64,000 nt of DNA from Bugula neritina (lineage: Eukaryota > Animalia > Bryozoa), in the NCBI GenBank assembly GCA_964035545.1, contig OZ037765.1:27527504-27591503 (forward strand). The letters are read 5' to 3'. The translations under genes and the position numbers were made by a program. Position 1 is the stretch's first letter. Each line of letters opens with the position of its first letter. Positions 8,520 to 56,003 of the stretch are shown here, piece by piece. The notes beneath the pieces were generated by a model, which had not been told where the DNA came from, made no database searches, and saw only the letters and a program-made list of their open reading frames with translations.

Positions 8520-31679
<23,160 letters not shown>

Positions 31680-43486: not shown

Positions 43487-45300
43487 CAGGGATGTAGTGG
43501 TACCCATACGGTCCCATACGCCGTATGGCCTAGAAGAAATTAGACTGTTCTAGGCCATACGCCCGTATGGGCATAATTATTTTTGAAAGATGATTAGTAC
43601 ACAGGATAGTTTGGGCATCCTCACTGAGAATATCATAAATTTCGCTCACAATCTAATTTAAGTTGTTGTTATGTTAATGCTATGTGGGTGGCATGCGTGT
43701 TGCCTACTTGTGATGGTTTAGCCTGAGATTACACTGGGAATAATAAGCAGCTATCAACATTCCATCTTCTTATCACTACGTGTTCACTGAAGCGCGAAGT
43801 GCTGTGCATTGGTGATTACTAAGGAGAAAATCTTTCATTTTCGGTGTATAAATCACTAACTTGTAGAAAATCTATGAAGGCTATTGAAAAGATCAAAAAA
43901 TTTGCCATACATAAATTTCTCAGGTTTCTGACAGTGTTTGTTCTATTTGAATACCATGCTTTCCTGCTGAGATATTTGGCAGGGATTGAAAAATAAACTT
44001 TTCAGCTAAAATTGGCCAAAAATGGGTAGATTTTTGTTTATAACTTTGCAAAAAAATATTGAAATCTCAAAAAGGCAGGTGCTCTGAGGAACAGGAAGCT
44101 CTAAAACCTGGTTTTTAAATTTTAATTCTAGCACAATTAAGTGAGGTTTTATTTGGCTGGACTGAATTCTTATAATATACCAATACCGTGGCTTCAGCAA
44201 GGCAGTGACAGCTAGAAGGTTGCCCTTATCTATCTTATGTGGACTTGCATTTTGTCGATAAGCAATGGAATTTGGAAAAAACCTACATGAAATCCAGAAA
44301 TAAAATCAAATTGTATTCAAGAAACAGTACCAGGTGTGTAGGAGAGGCTAATGAAAATTTATCACTGAGGTCTACAGGTACTATATCCACATTTTGGTCA
44401 AAAACCTAGCGTTATTGCATGTTAATTATCAATGCAATAAGGTTTTGCAAACTGTACACTACTATAAGTAACCTTTTATGTTTGATAGTACCAATGTCTG
44501 GCTTTACATTTAATCATCTTCTAGGTTAACACATATTAAACCTGTAAAATCTCTTCTTTTGGGGTATATTTCCTTGATGTATCTAGTGGAAGCTCAGGGG
44601 TTTTATTTTAAAACCAAGTTAACATACTCTTCTTGGGTGTGCGTTATTGTGTGTAAGGAGGTGTGGCGGTATCACCTTATGGATTAGACTAGTACCCTAT
44701 GAAACTCCAAACAGGTTTTCAACCAATTTCTGCTTGCCAATGAGTTATCAATTCAAATTCTTCTTTATAAATAACCAACACACATCTTTTGATTAGCAAT
44801 CTTCCTTTGTTCTGATCTATTATTCTTTTTTTGTGCAGTGTATTAGTGTGCAGTGTATTAGTTATTTGAAGTAATCAGGTTGCATTTGGAGAGCACTTGT
44901 TACCTGCCTCTATCCTTCCATCTTTTTGAGATATTTAGCAATTTTTCTGTACGGGTTGGACTTAGTGTCAGAACAAACTTAACTGCAGTTGAGTAAGACT
45001 ACATCACATTACAGTCAACAGGTATGGGACAATACTGAATATTTATATAGTTTGCAGCAATGCCCAGTCGTCATATAGCTGGTATGGTATGAAAATAATA
45101 GCGAGGTGCACATTTCAACACAGATTTTTTTCAGAAGAATTATAATTCACAATGGCTTTAAATTGCATAAATTTGCATCAGAAGTGCTCTGAAAGCTTCG
45201 GCGGCAGGGGCGCTGCCCCGAACCCCGCCGGGGGCCTGGGCGGCCCCTTGGACCCCGGCCTCAGAGTATGGCCTAGAATATTTTTGCCACTACATCCCTG
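43487..45300. mobile_element. Non-autonomous hAT-type DNA transposon
   Basis: TIR cagggatgtagtgg / ccactacatccctg; perfect 8-bp TSD CTTGTGAG; sub-terminal ccatac/gtatgg motifs. Confidence 0.9.
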
Positions 45301-45772: not shown

Positions 45773-47232
45773 TTAAAGTAGATTATTATGCGTTTATTTA
45801 ATGCAAAGGTACACGGGTAAAACTATACAGCAACTATAAACACGTTACATAATTACATACAGAGCGTACATAACTTCACCCTAACTACTCCACTGCCTGA
45901 CTGCCGGCTATCTAAGCGCGATAGCTATCAACTAATTAACTAGTCCTGCCTTTGTTCACAGCGTACGTTGGTAGCGTAGTAAGTACTGTCAAGCCGAGCA
46001 TAGGAGAGACGCTACGCTTTACAATAATAGAGTAGTAGCAGGAGAGTTATCCTTTCGATAATAAGATAACTCCTACACAAAATCCGTACCCTGCTCCGAC
46101 CTATCGAAAGGCACACTCCCTGCTATTAATTATCAAGACCAAACAAAGAGACAAAAATAAAAAAAAATACTTGCAAGATAAAAACAAAACAATTACAGTA
46201 CGAGTAATACAATAATAATCTGAGTTATTTACATCGAGTAACGCCCGCCACCGAATTAAAGTATAACATAATGTCACAGAGGGAGAACTAGCTAGTATGA
46301 AGAACACGAGAACAACAAATATAGAGTTCGACCCCAGTTACTTGCGTAGTCGATTCTCTAGTCGTTCCTGTAGTTTGTTTAACTCCGCAGCCGCCCTCTT
46401 CTTTTTCTTGCATAGGCGAGCCATACGCTTCTGCAACTTCAGCACGTCGCCCAGTATGGACTCATCTACCAGGGCCTCAGATGCCATCGTGCTATAGGCT
46501 CTCTTCCTCCTTTTCCTCCAAGTACTGGGTGAAAGGAATGTGGTCGTCGCTGGCGGCTGGGGAGTCTCTTCCACTGTCCGTCCGGGTTACCAGTACCCTG
46601 AAGGGGCGTGTGGGTATGTCGTCTGGTGGAAGAGTAGTTGATTCAGTATTGTTTTAATTTTCAGATTAGGGTTGATATGTTATCCAGAGAGTCTATTTAT
46701 CTAGTATAGAACTGCACCAGGCTAAGTCGAGTGAACGAGTATATTTTATTCACAACTATACATCATAAAAACACGATACATTATTTCTAACAAGTTACAC
46801 ATCTAATCTATTTCACACTCTAGCTTCGACTGAGTTAGCAGCGGGAAACTACAATTGCTGCTAACTATCAACTACGCTAATTGGCTATCCATTGTTCCGG
46901 GTCAATTACGCGACCCTACATGTTGTGCTGCTGGTAGTTCCACGAACCACCACACCGCCCCCACCAGCAGAAAGCCATCTTTCTGATATATATAAAAAAA
47001 ACATTCAATAGTAATTGCATACATCAGTGGACAAAAATAATACATAATATACAGGAAGAGACATAATAATACACAGAGTCGTTATAACGATCCGTTGCAT
47101 ACAATTGGCCAGCTGTAGATAGACGAGGAATACTAGCTAGCTGTGGTATTAGACAAGGAATAACCTGTCTAGCAGTTAAGCATTTGCACGAGTTTGGTTC
47201 TTCACCAAATGTGGAGTATTCTGGGTAGCATA

Positions 47233-48309
47233 CTAGAGTCCTTGTTGGGCACGCCGGTGCTTGGCTTGGCATGTACGCAGTTTCCGTTTCATACGGCATA
47301 CGGATCCCTTCAACTGGAAGAGTCCTGTGGTAGTGTTGAGTAGATCTGGCGCCAGCTGGGTGAACTCTTCTTGTAATCGTAGGAGGCGTTCTTCTACTGT
47401 AGCTAGTCGTACTGGGTCTGGGGACGGTGTCCGTCTGCGGCGTAATGGTGGACTGGGGGACCTGGTCCGTCTCTTCGCCGGGGTAGGGGAGATCTCTCCT
47501 TCTTCTGGATATGTAGTTTCCTCGGGGGTGTAGGTAATTGGAGGGCGGTCAGACACCAACGGGGATTGTTGGCGGGCGTTGTCTAACACACTTTGGAACC
47601 CCGAGGACAGAACGGCTAGCAGCATGGCCTTCTTTACCAGAGGTCGTATATATGTGAGGAACTCCGGGTACAGCTTAGCGTCGACCACATAGTTTTCTCC
47701 AGGGAAACAGCCCGCCGCTCTGTGTCTGGTGACGGGGTAGGGATACACATCATTGTACCCGCAGGGGCAGAAGGTCAGTAGGAGATGAGCATTGACGTGT
47801 AGTTTAAGGGAGCGGTGAGAGGCGCAATCTTCACCACAGATCTGGCATCTCGTCCGTCCTCTGGACCCCCAGGCTGTTTCTATTTCTTCTTCGGTTTGTG
47901 GAGACACCCACCGCCAACGGCGGCGTAGTGGCTCAGGCCGGTCACCACTAGCATAGTCCTCCGGATACGGAGCGGGAAGTGTTCTATCCCGTACCCTGGT
48001 TGTAGCGGGTCGAGTGTAATCTGAAAAAGTTTCAACAGTGTTAGTACATTACACTGCTGTGTTGTCAGCTTGAACAGCTTGGCAACTCCTAATTCAGTTA
48101 CCTCGTAGAGATTAATGATAGTGAATAGTCAGATAGAACTGTATTGCAATGAGATTATAAAAATCTCTAAGTCAAACTGAGTTCTTACTACGGTATTTCA
48201 CTAACCTATCTCCAGCTCGATTGACTCAGTGAGTCAGAGCTGAGCGATGCAATCTAGTTTCGTATTAAGATATAGTTAACTCACCCCACGATCTGTTGTC
48301 GTAAGACAT
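47233..48309 (-). CDS. Spliced accessory gene: C2H2 plus C2HC zinc fingers, RS/SP basic tract, coiled coil (about 270 aa)
   Basis: Exon 1 48309-48285 (MSYDNRSW G|gtgagt); 264-nt intron with TACTAAC and tttttcag; exon 2 48020-47233 in frame. Confidence 0.8.
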
Positions 48310-48333
48310 ACTGAATATGTGAAATGGTTTGAA

Positions 48334-51300
48334 CTACTGCTTAGAAACACGTCTACTCTTGACTGCATCAGCGTATGAAAAGATCGAGCAACGTGGTTGG
48401 GGTGCGTGATTAAGACTTTGTGCACCCGGCGGATGAATTTTGTTCCTACTTCCGCCGATACAAAAGTTGATATTTCCGTGGTGTTGACAACTCCCACATT
48501 TGCTCGATTCTTTTCTCGTACGGTTTTCCCCTAGACTTTCATGCGTGCCGCTTTTAACGCAGTCGCATACGAAGTCCTTCAAGTATGCGGGGGGTTGCCT
48601 CGTACGCTGTCCCCTTTCTAGGGGGGGTGACACGCTTGCCGGTTCGTTAGTAGGGGCCTCTACTGGCGTCTCTACTTCACCGTCAGCAGTCACCTCTTCT
48701 TGTTCTCCGGATGGAGCCCCTCCCTCTGTGGGGGTTTGCACTTCCGGAACCGGCTCGGTTTCTGGAAGTGGTGGAATTAGACTTGGCGGTGGCGGACACG
48801 CTTCTGTTGCCAGAAGCTGCCGCTCCTCTCTCACCAAGTTTTCTTCCCGCGGTATGACCACTTCGTATTCAGGTCCATGCCGCCGTCGCCCGCGCGTTGT
48901 TGTCTGCCTCCTGGGCTCTAACAACGGGGGGGCTTCTCCCACTCCGCCGGGGCTAGCCCAATACGGTTTCAAGCGAGACTCATTCTGGATAGACACCTGT
49001 CCTGAGCGCTCAATCTTGTACGTATGATTGGGCATAGCCTCGACGACCACGTAGGGGCCTACAAACTTAGGCTTCAGCTTATCAGCCTGTCCGCGGCGCC
49101 TACGGTAATTGACCATCCACACCTTATCTCCTCTTTGATAGAGGGGTGGTTCATCGGAATCTTCGTGCCGCACCTTCCACTGCTGTTGACGCAGTATCTC
49201 GTGTGCGGCCTTCATCCGTTCCACTAGTTCACTGGCATACTCGTGGACTGAGTTATCTTGCTCTGGAACGTGATAGGTGAGATGGTCAGGGACACGAGTC
49301 TCTCTCCCGAGCATCAAGAGGTTTGGGGTCTCACCAGTACTGGTGTGTGGGGTGCTACGGTATGCACGCATGACTTGTGGCAACACCGTATCCCATTCCT
49401 CTTGACCTCGTCCAAGGAGGAGACTCCGGAGCGCATCACCTAACATCCGGTTGTTGCGCTCCACCACCCCGTTACCTTGAGGGTGGTAGGGGGTGGTCCT
49501 GCTCTGATTTACTCCCCAGAGGTGGCAAAGGTCGCTCATCAGTTGAGACTGGAATTGAGCGCCTTGATCAGAGTGTATCTGTTCGGGAAGCCCAAAATAA
49601 CAGAATACGTGTTGGTCTAGTGCCCTGGCCACTGTTGGGGCTGATGCATCTGGGATAGCCAGAGCATCCGCCCACCTAGTAAAGTGGTCGGTTAATACTA
49701 GGATCCAATTATTGCCTCTGGGGGTCAGGGGCATGGGTCCGACCAGGTCTACAGCGACTACTTGCCAGGGCCTACCAGCATATAGCCTCCGCCGTCCTGC
49801 TTCACCAGGGGGGCGGCTATGCTTACTGGCCTGGCAGATCTCACACTGTTTGACTCTGAGCCGGACGTCACGCTCCATCTGCGGCCAATACCACCGGAGT
49901 CGTAATTTGGACATCACTCGCTTGACCCCTGCGTGGGCCTGCTTGTGAGTATCCCAAATCAACTCACGGCGGATGGCTGTGGGGCAGACTACCCTCTTCC
50001 TTTCCGGGTGTCTGCCGCTGGCAGCTAGAGAGATGGTTAGCAACCCATCCTGCCCGATCCGCAGCGAGTCCCAACGCTGACAGTATAGCCGGAATTCGGC
50101 GCATCCCTGTCTTATGCGTTCCTCGCTGGGTCGTCGCCCTTCCCTTTTGGCCCGGTAGATGTCTGCCACGACTCCAGGCAGCTCTTCTTGGAGCTTCTTC
50201 AGCTCTCGAACATTACCGGCCAGTACAGGGTTGGCGCGGAGGTTTTGTATATCCTCCGGGGCCTCATCAACTCTTTGCCTGAGTTGACCTTGATCCCAGT
50301 CAAACGGTGCTCCGTGATGAGCCAGCGTCTCCAACTCGCATCGAGGGGGACCTCCATCCCTCCTCTCGATGTTGAGACACTGTTTGCAACCTCCGTCAGG
50401 TCGGCGGCTCAACCCATCCGCATTGCTGTGTCTCTTGCCCGGTCGATGTTCGATCCGGTATGAGAATTCAGCTAGGATTTCGAGCCACCGGGCGACCTGA
50501 CTAGAGGGCTCTGCTCTCCTGCACAACCAGATCAGCGAGGCATGATCCGTACGCAGCCGGAACTTCCTGCCATATAGGTATGGTCTGAAGTGCTTCACTG
50601 ACTTGATTACTGCCAGCAGTTCCTTGCGGGTAGTGCAGTAATTTCGTTCAGCGGGGGAGAGAGACTTGCTGTAGTAGGCTACTACCACTTCTCGGCCTTC
50701 CTGCACTTGCGACAGCACAGCGCCAACATTCTGGTCACTGGCGTCTGTGTCTAGGATGTACTCCAGAGTGGGGTCTGGGTAGGCCAAGATGGGCGCCGTT
50801 AGGAGGCAGCCCTTGAGGCGGTCGAACGCGTCTTGTTCGACTGGAGTCCACTGCCACGTCACTCCCTTTGCGGTAAGCCGGTTTAACGGCTGGGCTATGC
50901 CCGCAAAGTCTGGTATGTATTGCCTGTAATACCCTACCAGCCCCAAGAAAGCCCGGAGTCCGGTCAAGTCTTGAGGGGTGACCCAGTCTTCTACTGCCCG
51001 TACCTTTTCGGGATCCGTTGCCACGCCGTTTCGACCGACAACGTGCCCCAGGTACTTGACCTCCGGCTGCAACAGAGCGCACTTGGAAGGTTTGAGCTTA
51101 AGACCGGCACCTCGGAGTCTCTCGAAAACCTCCTGCAGACGACTGACATGTGTCTCGAAGTCTGGAGAGATTACGATGACATCATCGAGGTAGACCAGCA
51201 GTGTCTTCCAATGGAGTCCGCTAAGGACTTGTTCCATCAGCCTCTGGAAGGTGGCTGGGGCGGAGGTTAACCCGAAGGGCAGCACCTTCCACTTCCACAA

Positions 51301-52965
51301 ACCGTCCCGTGTGATAAACGCCGCTTTCTCTTGGGCGTCGGGACTCAGAGGAACCTGCCAATAGCCGCTTAGCAAGTCTAACGTACTGAAGTACTTGCTG
51401 CCGGCTAGGGCGTCCAATGACTCGTCAATACGAGGTAGAGGGTAGGCGTCCTGTATGGTTACGCTATTGAGTTTGCGGTAGTCCACACAGAACCGCCAAC
51501 TGCCGTCTTTCTTCCGGACCAGTACGACTGGCGAGCTCCACGCACTATGGGCGGGCTCTATCAGTCCCCGGTCCAGAAGATCCCGTACTTGTCGGCTAAC
51601 CTCCTTCTCCTTCTCCGGCCCCAGCCTGCGTGTGGGCTGCCGGACAGGGACTGTCCCTGCAGTCAGCGGTATTTCGTGTCTGACAATTCCAGTCAGTCCC
51701 ACGTCATGCTCTCCGCTGCTGAACACATCACCGTAGTCGCGTAGTAACTTGGCCATAACTTGGCGCTCTCTGTTACTCGCGCAGCCACCACTGGCCGTCT
51801 CGTATAACTCCCGGAGATGTGTTGGGACTGCCCCTCGTCCCTGAATAGGGTGTCGAGGGGGTGCCTCTGTCGCATCACCCAGCGACGGGCCTACGTCTCC
51901 CTCTTGAACAGAGTGAAAACGGCCCAGCATCGACCCAGCCGGGAGCTTGATAGGCTCGGTAAAGGGGTTGACGCACTGCACTAAGATCTCCCCTTGCTCA
52001 GTCAGCTGATTCAGACTGCTGGCAAGTTGGATCTTTTCGTGCGCGCCTTCAACCACCCCGAGTCCAGAGATCCGGCTACTATTCACCCTGCAGTGAATGG
52101 TAGCCCGGGAGCGGCCTGGTATGGTACGGTTGCGTACCACTTGCACACCTCCCACTAAAGGGCAGCCGAACTTGTCGACGCAGGCGAGTTCCCGCCCGGA
52201 CATCATCATTGCAGATCTGCTAAAATCTATGTGACATCCGTGCCGTTTAAGGAACGGCATCCCGAGGATAGCATCCTCCTTGAGCTGACTGACGATGAAC
52301 GTCTCTTGGATCGTTTGATCGCGGACTCGTCCCGTCAGCTCAATTATACCATAGAAGGGAAGGCACGACCCGTCAGCTAGGGTGCCGTATTCCCCTTCGT
52401 ATGCTTCCATCTCGCCCCTGACCCTAGCACTGAGGGTGTCGAAGAGTTGGCGGCTTAAGAGGTTCGTGGTACAGCCCGAATCAATGAGAAAAGTAACAGC
52501 TTTGCCTTCCAGTTTACCGGGCAAGAAATAGCTGTTCCCATGGGGCTGCACCTGAACTCTCCCTTCAGGCCTTACTCTCGCAGGGAGTACCTCCCTCGCT
52601 TTGGGTCGCGAGGGAGGTCTCTTGGGGCGGTGATAGGTAGGCCTCGGGGGTGCCGAGGCTAGATTCTCAGCTACCTTTGTGTGCTCCCATCCAGATTCTT
52701 GGACTTGTAGCCCTGTGAATCTGTTGTGAAGGGGCATAGAAAAGGCAGCCGCGGGGCGAAGCCCCTTGCTGGTCCGTCGTGGCTGTTGCCACTGTTGGTT
52801 GCCAGTACGCGGTACCCGTCTGGGTGACCTGCGTTTCTTCTTCCCTAGAGGTTTCATCGTCGGCCCGCGGAAGGTGGGAACATCTGCGGGCCGCGGTAGT
52901 TTAACCCCTGATTTAGGAAGGGACAATATCGGCGGAAATGTCCTTGATTTCCGCACTCCCAGCAA
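48334..52965 (-). CDS. pol: Gypsy pol polyprotein (PR, RT, RNase H, IN), in the -1 frame relative to gag
   Basis: Uninterrupted 1543-codon ORF; LIDSG, PFGL, YLDD, DTDAS, HKQAH..CEIC, SDQG, VERNN, GPY motifs. Confidence 0.97.
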   Translation of the reverse strand: MLGVRKSRTFPPILSLPKSGVKLPRPADVPTFRGPTMKPLGKKKRRSPRRVPRTGNQQWQQPRRTSKGLRPAAAFSMPLHNRFTGLQVQESGWEHTKVAENLASAPPRPTYHRPKRPPSRPKAREVLPARVRPEGRVQVQPHGNSYFLPGKLEGKAVTFLIDSGCTTNLLSRQLFDTLSARVRGEMEAYEGEYGTLADGSCLPFYGIIELTGRVRDQTIQETFIVSQLKEDAILGMPFLKRHGCHIDFSRSAMMMSGRELACVDKFGCPLVGGVQVVRNRTIPGRSRATIHCRVNSSRISGLGVVEGAHEKIQLASSLNQLTEQGEILVQCVNPFTEPIKLPAGSMLGRFHSVQEGDVGPSLGDATEAPPRHPIQGRGAVPTHLRELYETASGGCASNRERQVMAKLLRDYGDVFSSGEHDVGLTGIVRHEIPLTAGTVPVRQPTRRLGPEKEKEVSRQVRDLLDRGLIEPAHSAWSSPVVLVRKKDGSWRFCVDYRKLNSVTIQDAYPLPRIDESLDALAGSKYFSTLDLLSGYWQVPLSPDAQEKAAFITRDGLWKWKVLPFGLTSAPATFQRLMEQVLSGLHWKTLLVYLDDVIVISPDFETHVSRLQEVFERLRGAGLKLKPSKCALLQPEVKYLGHVVGRNGVATDPEKVRAVEDWVTPQDLTGLRAFLGLVGYYRQYIPDFAGIAQPLNRLTAKGVTWQWTPVEQDAFDRLKGCLLTAPILAYPDPTLEYILDTDASDQNVGAVLSQVQEGREVVVAYYSKSLSPAERNYCTTRKELLAVIKSVKHFRPYLYGRKFRLRTDHASLIWLCRRAEPSSQVARWLEILAEFSYRIEHRPGKRHSNADGLSRRPDGGCKQCLNIERRDGGPPRCELETLAHHGAPFDWDQGQLRQRVDEAPEDIQNLRANPVLAGNVRELKKLQEELPGVVADIYRAKREGRRPSEERIRQGCAEFRLYCQRWDSLRIGQDGLLTISLAASGRHPERKRVVCPTAIRRELIWDTHKQAHAGVKRVMSKLRLRWYWPQMERDVRLRVKQCEICQASKHSRPPGEAGRRRLYAGRPWQVVAVDLVGPMPLTPRGNNWILVLTDHFTRWADALAIPDASAPTVARALDQHVFCYFGLPEQIHSDQGAQFQSQLMSDLCHLWGVNQSRTTPYHPQGNGVVERNNRMLGDALRSLLLGRGQEEWDTVLPQVMRAYRSTPHTSTGETPNLLMLGRETRVPDHLTYHVPEQDNSVHEYASELVERMKAAHEILRQQQWKVRHEDSDEPPLYQRGDKVWMVNYRRRRGQADKLKPKFVGPYVVVEAMPNHTYKIERSGQVSIQNESRLKPYWASPGGVGEAPPLLEPRRQTTTRGRRRHGPEYEVVIPREENLVREERQLLATEACPPPPSLIPPLPETEPVPEVQTPTEGGAPSGEQEEVTADGEVETPVEAPTNEPASVSPPLERGQRTRQPPAYLKDFVCDCVKSGTHESLGENRTRKESSKCGSCQHHGNINFCIGGSRNKIHPPGAQSLNHAPQPRCSIFSYADAVKSRRVSKQ

Positions 52966-53807
52966 AAACTGACTGTTTCTCCCTGTGGCGGCGCCGATGG
53001 CCGCATGGGCTCAGGGGCGGTACTCACTGGGTTTTGTGGTGTCAGTGTTGCTATCAGCTTGGCTAGCATGTCCGTCAGTTGAGTGACTTTTGATGCCGTC
53101 GCCAACTGGGACATGGCAGCCGCGGCGGGGGTTTCCTCCCCTTGTCCCGCGGCCGTGTCTGCGCGGTCTATCTCCACTTGGCGGGAGCTTCCGCGACTTT
53201 TATGCATTTGGTTAGCTAGGAGGTAAGCTTCCCCCTCAGTCAAAGCATCTTCAACGGTGGTGACTCCTCTAGCTAGAAACTGGTGGTGGAGACCCAGATC
53301 GTCGACAGATGCTATGAAAGCGTCGAGGGTGTACCTCTCGCGGTTGACTGGGGGCAAGTCGCTGTACGCGATCTGTGCCAGCTTCATGACCGCGGTGGCA
53401 TGCTCCCGCAGCGGGGTGCGGGGATCACGCCGCAACCTCTGCAATCGGGCCCTGGCATCTGTAGCAGAGAGGCCAAAGCGGGCCCGCAGAGAAGCAAAGA
53501 TATTATCAATGTCTACGCCCAGCCCATAGGGCTTGGCTTTGTCCATCAATGCCATTCTAAGCTTCAGCAGGGCCACCCTAGGGGGCCACTGAGCGACGTC
53601 CATTACGTCGCTAAACTCTTGGATAAATTGTTCCACCTCCTCTTCACCCGTGAAGGTGGGCGCCTTTAACCTGTAGCGGTCTTCAGCTAGTTTTCGCGGA
53701 ACCCTTCGCTCTTCTACTACATGGTTAACAGGCATTGTCTCTACAGCATTGTCTCTACGCTCACCTTCGATTGCCGGTGGTTGAATTTCAGCATTGTCAG
53801 TCTCCAT
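52854..53807 (-). CDS. gag: Gypsy gag, copy B (317 aa)
   Basis: CX2CX4HX4C knuckle; overlaps pol. Confidence 0.95.
   Translation of the reverse strand: METDNAEIQPPAIEGERRDNAVETMPVNHVVEERRVPRKLAEDRYRLKAPTFTGEEEVEQFIQEFSDVMDVAQWPPRVALLKLRMALMDKAKPYGLGVDIDNIFASLRARFGLSATDARARLQRLRRDPRTPLREHATAVMKLAQIAYSDLPPVNRERYTLDAFIASVDDLGLHHQFLARGVTTVEDALTEGEAYLLANQMHKSRGSSRQVEIDRADTAAGQGEETPAAAAMSQLATASKVTQLTDMLAKLIATLTPQNPVSTAPEPMRPSAPPQGETVSFCWECGNQGHFRRYCPFLNQGLNYRGPQMFPPSAGRR
52861..52905 (-). promoter_or_regulatory. Putative -1 ribosomal frameshift signal
   Basis: G_UUA_AAC in the gag frame, 5-nt spacer, CGGCCCGC/GCGGGCCG stem. Confidence 0.7.
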
Positions 53808-53819
53808 CTTGGATGCACT

Positions 53820-53837
53820 ATCCCACCGCTGCCACCA
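53820..53837 (-). promoter_or_regulatory. Primer binding site (tRNA-Leu), copy B
   Basis: TGGTGGCAGCGGTGGGAT, complementary to the eukaryotic tRNA-Leu 3' end ...AUCCCACCGCUGCCACCA as I recall it. Confidence 0.85.
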
Positions 53838-56003
53838 CTGTTATAATTTTCAGATTAGGGTTGATATGCTATCCAGAGAGTCTATTTATCTAGTATAGAA
53901 CTGCACCAGGCTAAGTCGAGTGAACGAGTATATTTTATTCACAACTATACATCATAAAAACACGATACATTATTTCTAACAAGTTACACATCTAATCTAT
54001 TTCACACTCTAGCTTCGACTGAGTTAGCAGCGGGAAACTACAATTGCTGCTAACTATCAACTACGCTAATTGGCTATCCATTGTTCCGGGTCAATTACGC
54101 GACCCTACATGTTGTGCTGCTGGTAGTTCCACGAACCACCACAGTATTACATACGTCGGCGTCAGAGTCACTTTCTACAGTCGGTCTAGTAGAGAGAAAG
54201 TTCAGTAAAAGGGCCTGTCAACGGTTCGTCGACGTCACGTGGGGCAGTATAAGGTCTCGAAACTCCGGGTATGAGTCGGCATCCTCTTCATATAGATGGC
54301 CCACATAGCTGTGTTGAGTACGTTGATGGCGTTTTTATAAAAGTGGTGTACCCACTGGGGCAAAAAGCCACAGTAAAATATTGGGGGACGTGTATTCGTA
54401 GGCGTTTGAGTGTTGAGAATGTGCGTCAACACTCGCTACATTTCCTGTTGGTATCCTGTCCAATAATAGCCTGTATCAGAGTTCATGTTTGTCTGGTTGT
54501 CCAAGTCGTCCGTGGTAGTAATGCTAGAGGTAATTCGAGTTTGTCGGTCGTGTCCAGTTGCATAGCGTAGTCATCAGGGGTGGTTGTCGGCTGTTCCGTC
54601 GGCGTCGTCAGGTGTGTGTCAGATAGCATGTGTCAAGTCTAGCTTCAGATATGTTGTCCCACTGTGTGGTGGGAGTGTCGAGTAGAGCCTGTATCTCAGG
54701 AGATACAGGTACAATCCTGCCTGCAACAGAGTATTCAAATTCACACATAATGTTCTCGAATCACACTCCCTGCGGGGGACTCCACCCAGTCAGTACGACA
54801 CTGTGACTGAGTTGACAACCAACAACCTCCTGGTTTTCATAAACCATCCGGGTGACCGCTCAACTCGAAGTCGCAGGTGAAATCATCTGACGTCAGGAGT
54901 CCAACTTTAGCATTATGATAAAGTGAGACTGAAGTCGACTACCAGAATAAATTCTAATTAATATAAATAGAATCATATCTAGTAGACTTACCCTCCAAAA
55001 CAGGTGCTGTATCAGCCATGCTGCTTACTAATCTGTTTTTATAGGGCCCGTAGTAGCCAAATTTGAGAGACGTGCTGCCTCTCTGTTGTTTACAATTGAA
55101 AAAGGCGCTCTACACAGCTATAAGGATGATTACATAACACCCTTGTCGCTAGTGAGTTGGCTTCGCCCTGCTGACCCGCTTCCCCCCTCCCCGGTCGACC
55201 TGGCTAACTGGCCTAGTCTGTACGCCACTGGCAAGCACAACTCTCAATTGCTGTCCCCCAGACTTCTTTTGTGCTGGTTGACAAGTTATAGTATACTATG
55301 CATGTCGACCAAGTCACACAAGAAGTCTTTCAAATAAGATGGTGGCGCCCTAGTACGTTGACTACGTTCCAACTGTACTGGGGTGAAGGAGGGGCTGCTG
55401 CCACTGGTGACTCTACCACTATGGGTGGGGTCTCCAGTGTGGGGGGTCCACCGGTACGAGTGGCTCCTCCCTAGCTATCTCCTCCTCATGAATTTGAGGA
55501 GTTTCCATCTCATCAGGGGACGACAGGTGTGTCGGCCGGCTCCACTGGTGGTGAGGCCGGTCTTCCGGTGTGTTGGTCGCCTCTTCCGAAGGTGGGGGCG
55601 GCCGATAACACAAATAACATTAGTTTATTTCATAGAAGAAATATAGAAGTTATTTTATTCTAGATTATGATCAGACCAGAGTACTTTGTATATTTTTGCT
55701 TTACTTATGATAAATGCAGTTTTCTATTGTTTGTGTTTGTCCTGTAATATATGTTTATAATGCACGCCAGTCTTTCATCCAACTTTCTTACAGTTTGCGA
55801 TTTATCATTTCTTAATTTGAGCAGTTGGCCTATTCCACCTCAATAGAAGAGTTTTAATATTCATAAATTTATGCGTTGACCAAAGTTGAGGTTGATTAAA
55901 AAATAGAGACATATTAATCTAGTTTATGATTAATGTCTCTATTTTTGTTAATGATTAGTTTTATGCCCAGTTAGTGTTTGAATTCAGATTTTAAATATTT
56001 CAG

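Follow-up and report, generated by a model that had tools for sequence, protein, structure and literature searches.

Long terminal repeat (LTR) retrotransposons rarely retain spliceosomal introns, which are lost each time a spliced RNA is copied back. The plant Ogre elements maintain one such intron, which separates pol domains. The present study concerns a 64,000-nt stretch of the genome of the bryozoan Bugula neritina (contig OZ037765.1, positions 27,527,504 to 27,591,503; hereafter the window), in which a decayed Ty3/Gypsy fragment carries the remains of an accessory gene with a very short first exon, a phase-1 intron and a main exon encoding zinc fingers. A younger Ty3/Gypsy element that split this fragment has a gene of the same layout, and comparison with relatives elsewhere suggests that the spliced zinc-finger accessory gene is very probably an old feature of a Gypsy clade, with an intron predating three families.

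As in Ogre, the intron described here must stay in the RNA to be reverse transcribed; unlike the Ogre intron, it lies in an accessory gene or, in one family, in frame in the tail of Pol. In chromoviruses, the chromodomain is a targeting domain that forms a C-terminal extension of integrase. The module encoded by the bryozoan gene is likewise found as a C-terminal extension of an integrase-bearing Pol in that same family; however, it is built of two zinc fingers and a coiled coil, can exist as a gene of its own, and has a targeting role that is putative.

Among animal elements, Cer1 of Caenorhabditis elegans, a Ty3/Gypsy element, produces an accessory protein, CERV, from a spliced mRNA of the element, and this protein acts on the unspliced genomic RNA (PMC10309623). 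CERV is of a nuclear type, with a leucine zipper, a basic patch resembling a nuclear localization signal and a Cys-rich putative zinc finger; its N-terminus is in common with Gag, its gene has five exons and it contains a G-domain (PMC10309623). The bryozoan element is likewise of Gypsy type and would translate its accessory protein from a spliced mRNA, but the gene for this protein lies 3' of pol, has two exons and encodes two C2H2-like fingers, and no sequence similarity to CERV was found. In errantiviruses and the bdelloid elements Vesta and Juno, ORF3/env (ORF, open reading frame) are separate units expressed from spliced messages (PMC5408684). The bryozoan gene is similarly a third ORF between pol and the 3' LTR, although its product has neither a transmembrane segment nor similarity to fusion proteins, and its intron lies inside the ORF3 coding sequence, just past the start codon. 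Spliced third ORFs, a spliced regulatory gene in a Gypsy element and the retention of introns in Ogre were already known. New features are the module, the position of the intron directly behind the start codon, the survival of this intron in split as well as fused forms, and intron-less copies that appear to record splicing.

The old Ty3/Gypsy fragment

The window lies at C1:27.53-27.59 Mb of the 216-Mb assembly G000 and consists of AT-rich eukaryotic DNA (approximately 30-35% guanine plus cytosine) with retroelements richer in these bases. On its minus strand, 55620-54148 and 46646 to approximately 45773 form a single decayed, 5'-truncated Ty3/Gypsy fragment, split by a young element designated copy B. 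The parts of this fragment are:

55287-55620, minus strand: 3' end of the old pol, located by tblastn of the young Pol; in relatives the integrase lies upstream
55020-55286, minus strand: non-coding spacer from the pol stop to the micro-exon, conserved among old-lineage subfamilies
54992-55019, minus strand: old micro-exon, 28 nt (ATG, 8 codons and 1 base), with A at -3 and ending G|GTAAGT
54721-54991, minus strand: old intron, 271 nt, phase 1, GT..AG, ending TTGCAG
54148-54720, minus strand: first part of the old exon 2, decayed, located by tblastn of residues 4-198 of the L050 exon 2
46338-46645, minus strand: second part of the old exon 2, with basic patch and coiled-coil tail, stop TAA at 46340-46338, corresponding to L050 residues 202-305
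45773-46337, minus strand: old 3' untranslated region and LTR remnant; L032 aligned to 46646-45773 with 70% identity

The pol tail contains the motif QRTRxPPxYLKDFxCD at 55399-55307, which is identical to residues 1440-1470 of the young Pol at 18 of 31 positions (tblastn, E 6e-6), and ends with a TAA stop at 55289-55287. DNA past approximately 55620 is unrelated to the old element, which is therefore truncated on its 5' side near this position; the pol tail is the sole part of Pol left in the window, and the LTR side is a 3' remnant only.

The original prediction, which was made from the sequence of the window alone, had placed a micro-exon at 55019-54992 with the donor G|GTAAGT, followed by a 271-nt phase-1 intron ending at 54721, and direct reading confirmed both. 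The same 28-nt exon occurs in 12 relatives in G000 and on two JGI contigs. The old intron contains a 21-nt near-palindrome (54924-54904), conserved across the old lineage, and a CRE-like TGACGTCA at 54895-54888. The spacer of approximately 270 nt ahead of the old-lineage ATG shows conservation on a par with coding sequence in an alignment and identity profile. A TATA-like box 24 nt ahead of the old ATG was rejected, as it is too near to serve that ATG and is not conserved.

To follow the main exon across the insertion, the 306-aa exon 2 protein of L050, an intact relative, was mapped separately onto each side of copy B. Residues 4-198 matched 54709-54155 (tblastn, E 1e-31 and 4e-29) and residues 202-305 matched 46647-46341 (E 1e-19). 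Thus the basic, coiled-coil tail at 46338-46574, which had been assigned to the old gene beyond copy B, does belong to it. An alignment with L032 crosses the insertion site in the same manner, covering 55587-54156 and then directly 46646-45773. The first part of exon 2 encodes, in order, an acidic N-terminus, a W..T motif, a C2H2 finger, a CxC..H finger and YxVDxxxYxEF, and extends up to SDSDAD. With at least four in-frame stops and at least three frameshifts, the accessory gene of the old element in the window is a relic.

The young element within the old gene

Copy B and a second, near-identical young Ty3/Gypsy element, copy A, both lie on the minus strand of the window. The accessory gene of copy B is intact and served as the comparator:

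46650-54143, minus strand: young copy B, nested in the old element, LTR pair 99.3% identical
47233-48309, minus strand: accessory gene of copy B, with ATG, donor and acceptor kept in 31/31 young copies
48309-48285, minus strand: micro-exon of copy B, 25 nt
48284-48021, minus strand: intron of copy B, 264 nt, GT..AG, phase 1
48020-47233, minus strand: exon 2 of copy B, joined in phase 1
approximately 21896-29403, minus strand: young copy A, near-identical to copy B

The LTRs of copy B (54143-53839 and 46954-46650) are 305 bp each, run from TGTGG to AACA and are flanked by a 4-bp target duplication, ATAC, at 54147-54144 and 46649-46646. Copy B is a clean insertion into exon 2 of the old element. 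It encodes gag, a 1543-aa Pol and the accessory gene 3' of pol. Pfam placed an Asp_protease domain at Pol residues 149-238, RVT_1 at 483-642, RNase H at 706-834 and integrase at 995-1162. This order of protease, reverse transcriptase (RT), RNase H and integrase, together with LTRs and a short target duplication, identifies copy B as Ty3/Gypsy (Metaviridae). The young exon 2 has no ATG ahead of its fingers. Within the young intron, a palindrome at 48222-48236 (TGACTCA-C-TGAGTCA) contains two AP-1-like half sites.

When the young exon 2 was searched by tblastn against the masked window, it matched the old fragment at 54590-54321 (E 0.002 with composition correction and 7e-7 without), which bears out the proposed zinc-finger similarity of the two genes. 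Homology of the proteins proved significant through intact relatives: the young exon 2 and that of L050 are 37% identical over 84 residues (BLASTP, E 6e-15). A resemblance between a PDDYA motif in the old gene and PEDYA in the young one, also pointed out originally, is probably due to chance, the motif not being conserved among intact old-lineage relatives.

Intact relatives of the old lineage

The DNA of the old fragment gave 57 matches in the genome, the closest being L032 and L033 (81-82%), with a larger group near 70%. Fifteen loci span the region; the donor GT[A/G]AGT and acceptor TTGCAG are present in all 15, and an intact 28-nt ATG exon in 12. The introns measure 225-269 nt in these loci, and up to 271 nt when the window copy and L062 are included, and none is a multiple of three. 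Open main exons of 301-306 codons were found in L050, L053, L037 and L052, and a protein search revealed at least 20 further intact copies in the genome. In total, donor and acceptor were kept in 18/18 intron-bearing old-lineage copies examined, as the original prediction required of intact relatives.

The same layout occurs on two contigs (L061 and L062) of the JGI metagenome sample 3300002729. L061 is a full-length element with LTRs at approximately 3768 and 11066, 7298 nt apart, and the gene lies between pol and the 3' LTR; its Pol contains RVT_1, RT_RNaseH and rve, in that order, according to Pfam. In the old lineage, the frame of the micro-exon differs from that of pol, and an extension in the pol frame ends at a stop overlapping the ATG.

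The old-lineage subfamilies are mosaics. L050 and L037 are approximately 94% alike from pol through the intron and 76-86% alike in exon 2, while their LTRs are much more diverged, a pattern that suggests recombination swapping the 3' module. Tree-based statements therefore need care, and for the same reason no constraint was read into the apparent strong conservation of the intron when set against synonymous sites. In L055 and L043, the last approximately 400 nt of pol and the spacer are approximately 80% identical to the old fragment, and the integrase region is approximately 50% identical to that of the young family; the module was not found within 1.5 kb downstream.

A family with the module fused to Pol

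A third family, of the type found on JGI contig L067, has at least 10 copies in G000 with 97-99% identity and open frames of 1981-1983 aa, in which Pol continues in frame into the module. The fused frame contains a candidate donor, CCTG|GTAAGTCCACTAGA, matching the old-lineage donor at 14/15 bases, and an acceptor with a pyrimidine-rich tract, TTCTGTTGTAG|AC. The 327-nt segment between them is in frame, stop-free and in phase 1, the phase of the old and young introns. This donor motif, GGTAAGTC(C/T)ACTAGA, gives 14/15 identical bases between the old lineage and the fused family; besides these 15 nt (blastn), the fused-family tail gave no match to a profile built from old-lineage introns.

The integrase region yields a tree in which the fused and young families are sisters (100/100), both placed among the old-lineage split families; identity of these families to the young family in this region is 50-75%. 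Because of this placement, and because the donor motif and phase are shared, the intron would predate the split of the old, young and fused families, and the module would have switched between an own-gene state and a Pol-tail state. Since the evolution of the families is reticulate, the mapping of the gene onto a simple RT tree, which had been suggested as a check, would be blurred.

On the ENA contig L068, an ORF of 1145-1208 aa (P0147 and P0181) combines an N-terminal aspartyl protease with the zinc-finger module, which lies around residue 900; neither RT nor integrase was detected in the part between them.

Intron-less copies

Copies lacking the intron were found in more than one family. 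The metagenome protein P0012, which resembles that of L050, has the micro-exon peptide running directly into exon 2, and its JGI contig, L065, is without the intron. Against G000, L065 gives a contiguous match at five paralogous places (L058 and L059; C1:32.83-33.09 Mb), and intron-bearing copies match it in two pieces. L058, L059 and L065 have exon 2 directly behind the micro-exon, the two meeting precisely where splicing would have put them, and the pol tail lies upstream of both. The intron-less old-lineage copies form a single clade (99/96) between intron-bearing groups, which points to one loss event followed by segmental duplication. The five paralogs at C1:32.83-33.09 Mb are truncated and have a 3' flank in common, and one intron-less copy in L059 has a 320-aa open frame despite two compensating frameshifts.

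A second loss was found in the fused family, where copies were judged from coordinates and open-frame lengths only. The copy at C4:18654028-18655101 matches query positions 1-428 and 755-1401, the two pieces abutting at a single base. What it lacks is precisely the 327-nt segment bounded by CCTG|GTAAGT and TTGTAG|AC, and its open frame, at 1874 aa, is shorter than 1983 aa by 109. The boundary microhomology in this case is 1 nt only. In the young family, the open frame of five copies (C2:14376816, C6:6204748, C2:11657371, C4:17701001 and C1:35329536) measures exactly 278 aa, as would be expected of a young copy without the intron (8+8+1+261); most young copies have 286 or 271.

Two independent losses exact at GT..AG are the expected trace of reverse-transcribed spliced RNA. 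These copies offer strong indirect support for splicing, and from such genomic patterns we infer that the intron is spliced in vivo.

Selection on the coding frame

The coding sequence of the accessory gene is clearly under purifying selection. Between old-lineage subfamilies, the ratio of non-synonymous to synonymous substitution rates (dN/dS) of exon 2 is mostly 0.08-0.21, and across 31 copies of the young family diversity at codon positions 1, 2 and 3 is 0.009, 0.004 and 0.033, respectively. In the 22 codons before the first Met of the old-lineage exon 2, the proportion of non-synonymous differences (pN) is 0.04-0.3 in nearly all pairs, well below the synonymous proportion (pS) of 0.3-0.8; the stretch must therefore be translated in this frame from a start further upstream. 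The sole conserved ATG able to reach it is that of the micro-exon, via the splice.

The claim that the layout is an old, selected feature of a whole lineage is thus upheld by the purifying selection and the exact intron-less copies, but needs amending in that the module is not always a separate gene. Overall, the interpretation first given to this fragment is supported.

The encoded protein

An alignment of 11 sequences revealed a common order of parts: a variable N-terminus, W..T, CX2CX12HX3H, CxCG..H..C, YxVDxxxYxEF, an acidic patch, a basic patch and a C-terminal helix. In a core alignment of 49 sequences, W, T, C, C, H, H, C, C and H are invariant or nearly so. The motif CX2-4CX12HX3-5H is invariant in all 49 members, in agreement with the classical C2H2 definition, and Pfam zf-C2H2 matches 8-9/49 of them, with E 5e-5 in some. 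The proteins of the window themselves gave sub-threshold zinc-finger matches and, beyond these, no Pfam family and no match to env. Similarly, no Pfam or Protein Data Bank (PDB) match besides zinc fingers indicated kinship with proteins of the Rev, Rex, Tas or CERV type.

A transmembrane segment is absent (maximum hydropathy 0.74 and 1.36, with no 19-mer above 1.4), and therefore the accessory gene is not an env gene.

The AlphaFold model of the domain, based on 49 sequences, reached a predicted local distance difference test (pLDDT) score of 90.7 and a predicted template-modelling (pTM) score of 0.81. A full-length model from 11 sequences was poor (pLDDT 44), the C-terminal helix at 263-305 being its sole confident part. 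Foldseek with the domain model gave no match in the PDB at E <= 0.001, and an atlas search remained below a TM score of 0.5. In an exhaustive alignment, residues 36-87 superposed on the tandem C2H2 DNA-binding fingers of Kaiso, SALL4, ZNF524, ZBTB20 and CTCF (Z 3.1-3.4, root-mean-square deviation 2.3-2.8 A over 50-57 residues), scores that are weak and concern a small motif; the helices around the fingers had no structural match. As in Kaiso, SALL4, CTCF and ZBTB20, two consecutive beta-beta-alpha fingers superpose and the first is CX2CX12HX3H. Unlike in those proteins, there are only two fingers, they lie inside a larger helical domain, and the second is CxC..H..C/H; the Z values are low.

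Modelling of the tail as a homodimer (two copies of residues 250-306) gave a score of 0.44, the best of three controls reaching 0.02, with a partner pLDDT of at least 76 and contacts that agree 100% between runs. The mark used to call a dimer was reached by 21/30 solved same-chain pairs and 0/23 single chains among microbial proteins, and by 17/29 pairs and 0/30 single chains among those of eukaryotes. The model supports a putative dimerization of the coiled-coil tail.

A profile search of 1.84 billion representatives returned 304 clusters, nearly all of them unnamed metagenome ORFs. Among ten clusters checked, the only named source was Watersipora subatra. The locus in this species (L066; OY755163.1:43535837-43564824) has two whole modules in tandem, each with fingers and coiled-coil tail, and lacks a pol over 8 kb around them. 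The annotation (XP_067940963/4) joins them into a 644-aa gene model with a 9.8-kb first intron.

Alternative explanations

The first alternative is that the module was a bryozoan host gene in origin, or became one, and was captured together with its own intron, the layout then reflecting a single capture. The tandem modules of Watersipora, which stand on a chromosome without a nearby pol, would agree with this, as would the lack of a Pfam family for a module of some 300 clusters, mostly on metagenome contigs. However, the Watersipora units are single-exon and could be remnants of elements, and the element gene of the Bugula type is clearly under purifying selection. Capture is possible but unlikely, and is in any case compatible with an old spliced gene in the clade rather than opposed to it.

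A second alternative is that the protein is made only as a fusion to Pol, by read-through and splicing, the ATG of the micro-exon being incidental. The young family has its micro-exon ATG (48309-48307) in the same frame as the pol stop TAG (48336-48334), eight codons further downstream; read-through of this stop combined with splicing would yield a Pol-module fusion resembling that of the sister family, which is a true fusion. Against this, the old-lineage micro-exon is not in the pol frame and the extension of pol stops at the ATG; all families retain an ATG preceded by A at -3; and no codon-position bias was seen in the last 38 pol codons of the young family. Production solely as a fusion is therefore improbable.

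Several points weigh against the preferred reading of an old, spliced accessory gene. A check of RNA data found two runs, neither with a joint at the young intron (48284/48021, within 46300-49800), at sparse coverage: run X1 is a symbiont metagenome labelled RNA-Seq (share 0.05) that barely covers the gene, and X2 is DNA-like. An nhmmer profile of old-lineage introns gave no match to the young intron. Because the intron bodies have no detectable similarity, homology of the young and old introns rests on position, phase, size and the motif; the match first described between them holds for phase, size and position, but in sequence is limited to the short motif near the donor. The old-lineage intron boundaries share the microhomology GGT.AG (5/6), and, considered on its own, the old-lineage loss could have come about by slippage. 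A shorter protein that contains the fingers could be started without splicing from a Met at codon 23 within the old-lineage exon 2. No consensus donor was found in the 5' leader of copy B, and the function of the protein is wholly inferred.

Some of these points would also fit a third alternative, in which the layouts came to resemble each other by convergence or chance, no splicing takes place and the copies without the intron result from deletion at microhomologies. The missing RNA joint (in sparse data) and the old-lineage microhomology are in its favour, as is the number of consensus donors in a 7.5-kb element, approximately 3.7 being expected and three observed. It has to contend, however, with two independent, base-exact losses at GT..AG in different families, with a phase 1 common to three families and a donor motif extending beyond the generic consensus, and with selection on the frame before the first Met and signals retained in every old and young copy counted. 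Chance is accordingly a very improbable explanation of the layout. That the intron-less form is ancestral, an intron-generating insertion having entered each family separately, is hardly credible: the root of the old-lineage tree is not fixed, but an intron of identical site, phase and donor motif would have had to be gained three times, the copies without it amount to a small clade of segmental duplicates plus one further copy, and in the integrase tree the fused family lies within families that bear the intron.

Proposed expression and function

The preferred reading remains a spliced accessory gene older than the three families. The fragment in the window is what remains of a dead member of an older Ty3/Gypsy family, truncated at its 5' end and subsequently split by a young element. 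In this family the accessory gene between pol and the 3' LTR would consist of a start exon of 8-9 codons spliced to a main exon of approximately 300 codons, with removal of a GT-AG intron of approximately 225-271 nt in phase 1. Unspliced RNA would retain the intron and hand it to new copies, and spliced RNA would make the protein, with its acidic N-terminus, two tandem C2H2-like fingers, basic patch and C-terminal helix modelled as a dimer. In the split families gag and pol precede the gene, which lies approximately 5.8 kb away from the 5' end and would therefore need a sub-genomic mRNA. This may arise from an internal start or from a weak upstream splice; both are possible since the leader is without a consensus donor and the spacer is conserved.

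As to function, the module is tentatively proposed, with somewhat less than even confidence, to bind nucleic acid as a dimer and, together with integrase or the pre-integration complex, to serve in tethering or targeting. This guess follows from the sister family, which carries the module as a C-terminal extension of an integrase-bearing Pol. The next guess would be a regulator of the unspliced RNA of the element, similar to CERV, or of transcription from the LTR. A broader and rather unlikely possibility is that the intron, perhaps alternatively spliced, acts as a clade-wide switch, in which its retention gives new copies and its removal gives a dimeric factor, the module being exchanged with host genes. 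In such a switch the factor could be a free protein or a Pol tail, and might steer integration or control unspliced RNA in the manner of Rev or CERV.

One intron would thus have outlasted the divergence of at least three families, in separate-gene and in-Pol forms, and the domain can be seen moving between Pol-tail and own-gene states. These elements may serve as a natural system for asking how a retroelement balances splicing against packaging, and what a zinc-finger, coiled-coil partner of integrase does. For annotation, the module accounts for hundreds of unnamed ORFs in bryozoan genomes and bryozoan-associated metagenomes.

Elsewhere in the window, 43487-44549 on the plus strand has 93% identity to the flank of L037; it is another dispersed repeat, unrelated to the old gene.

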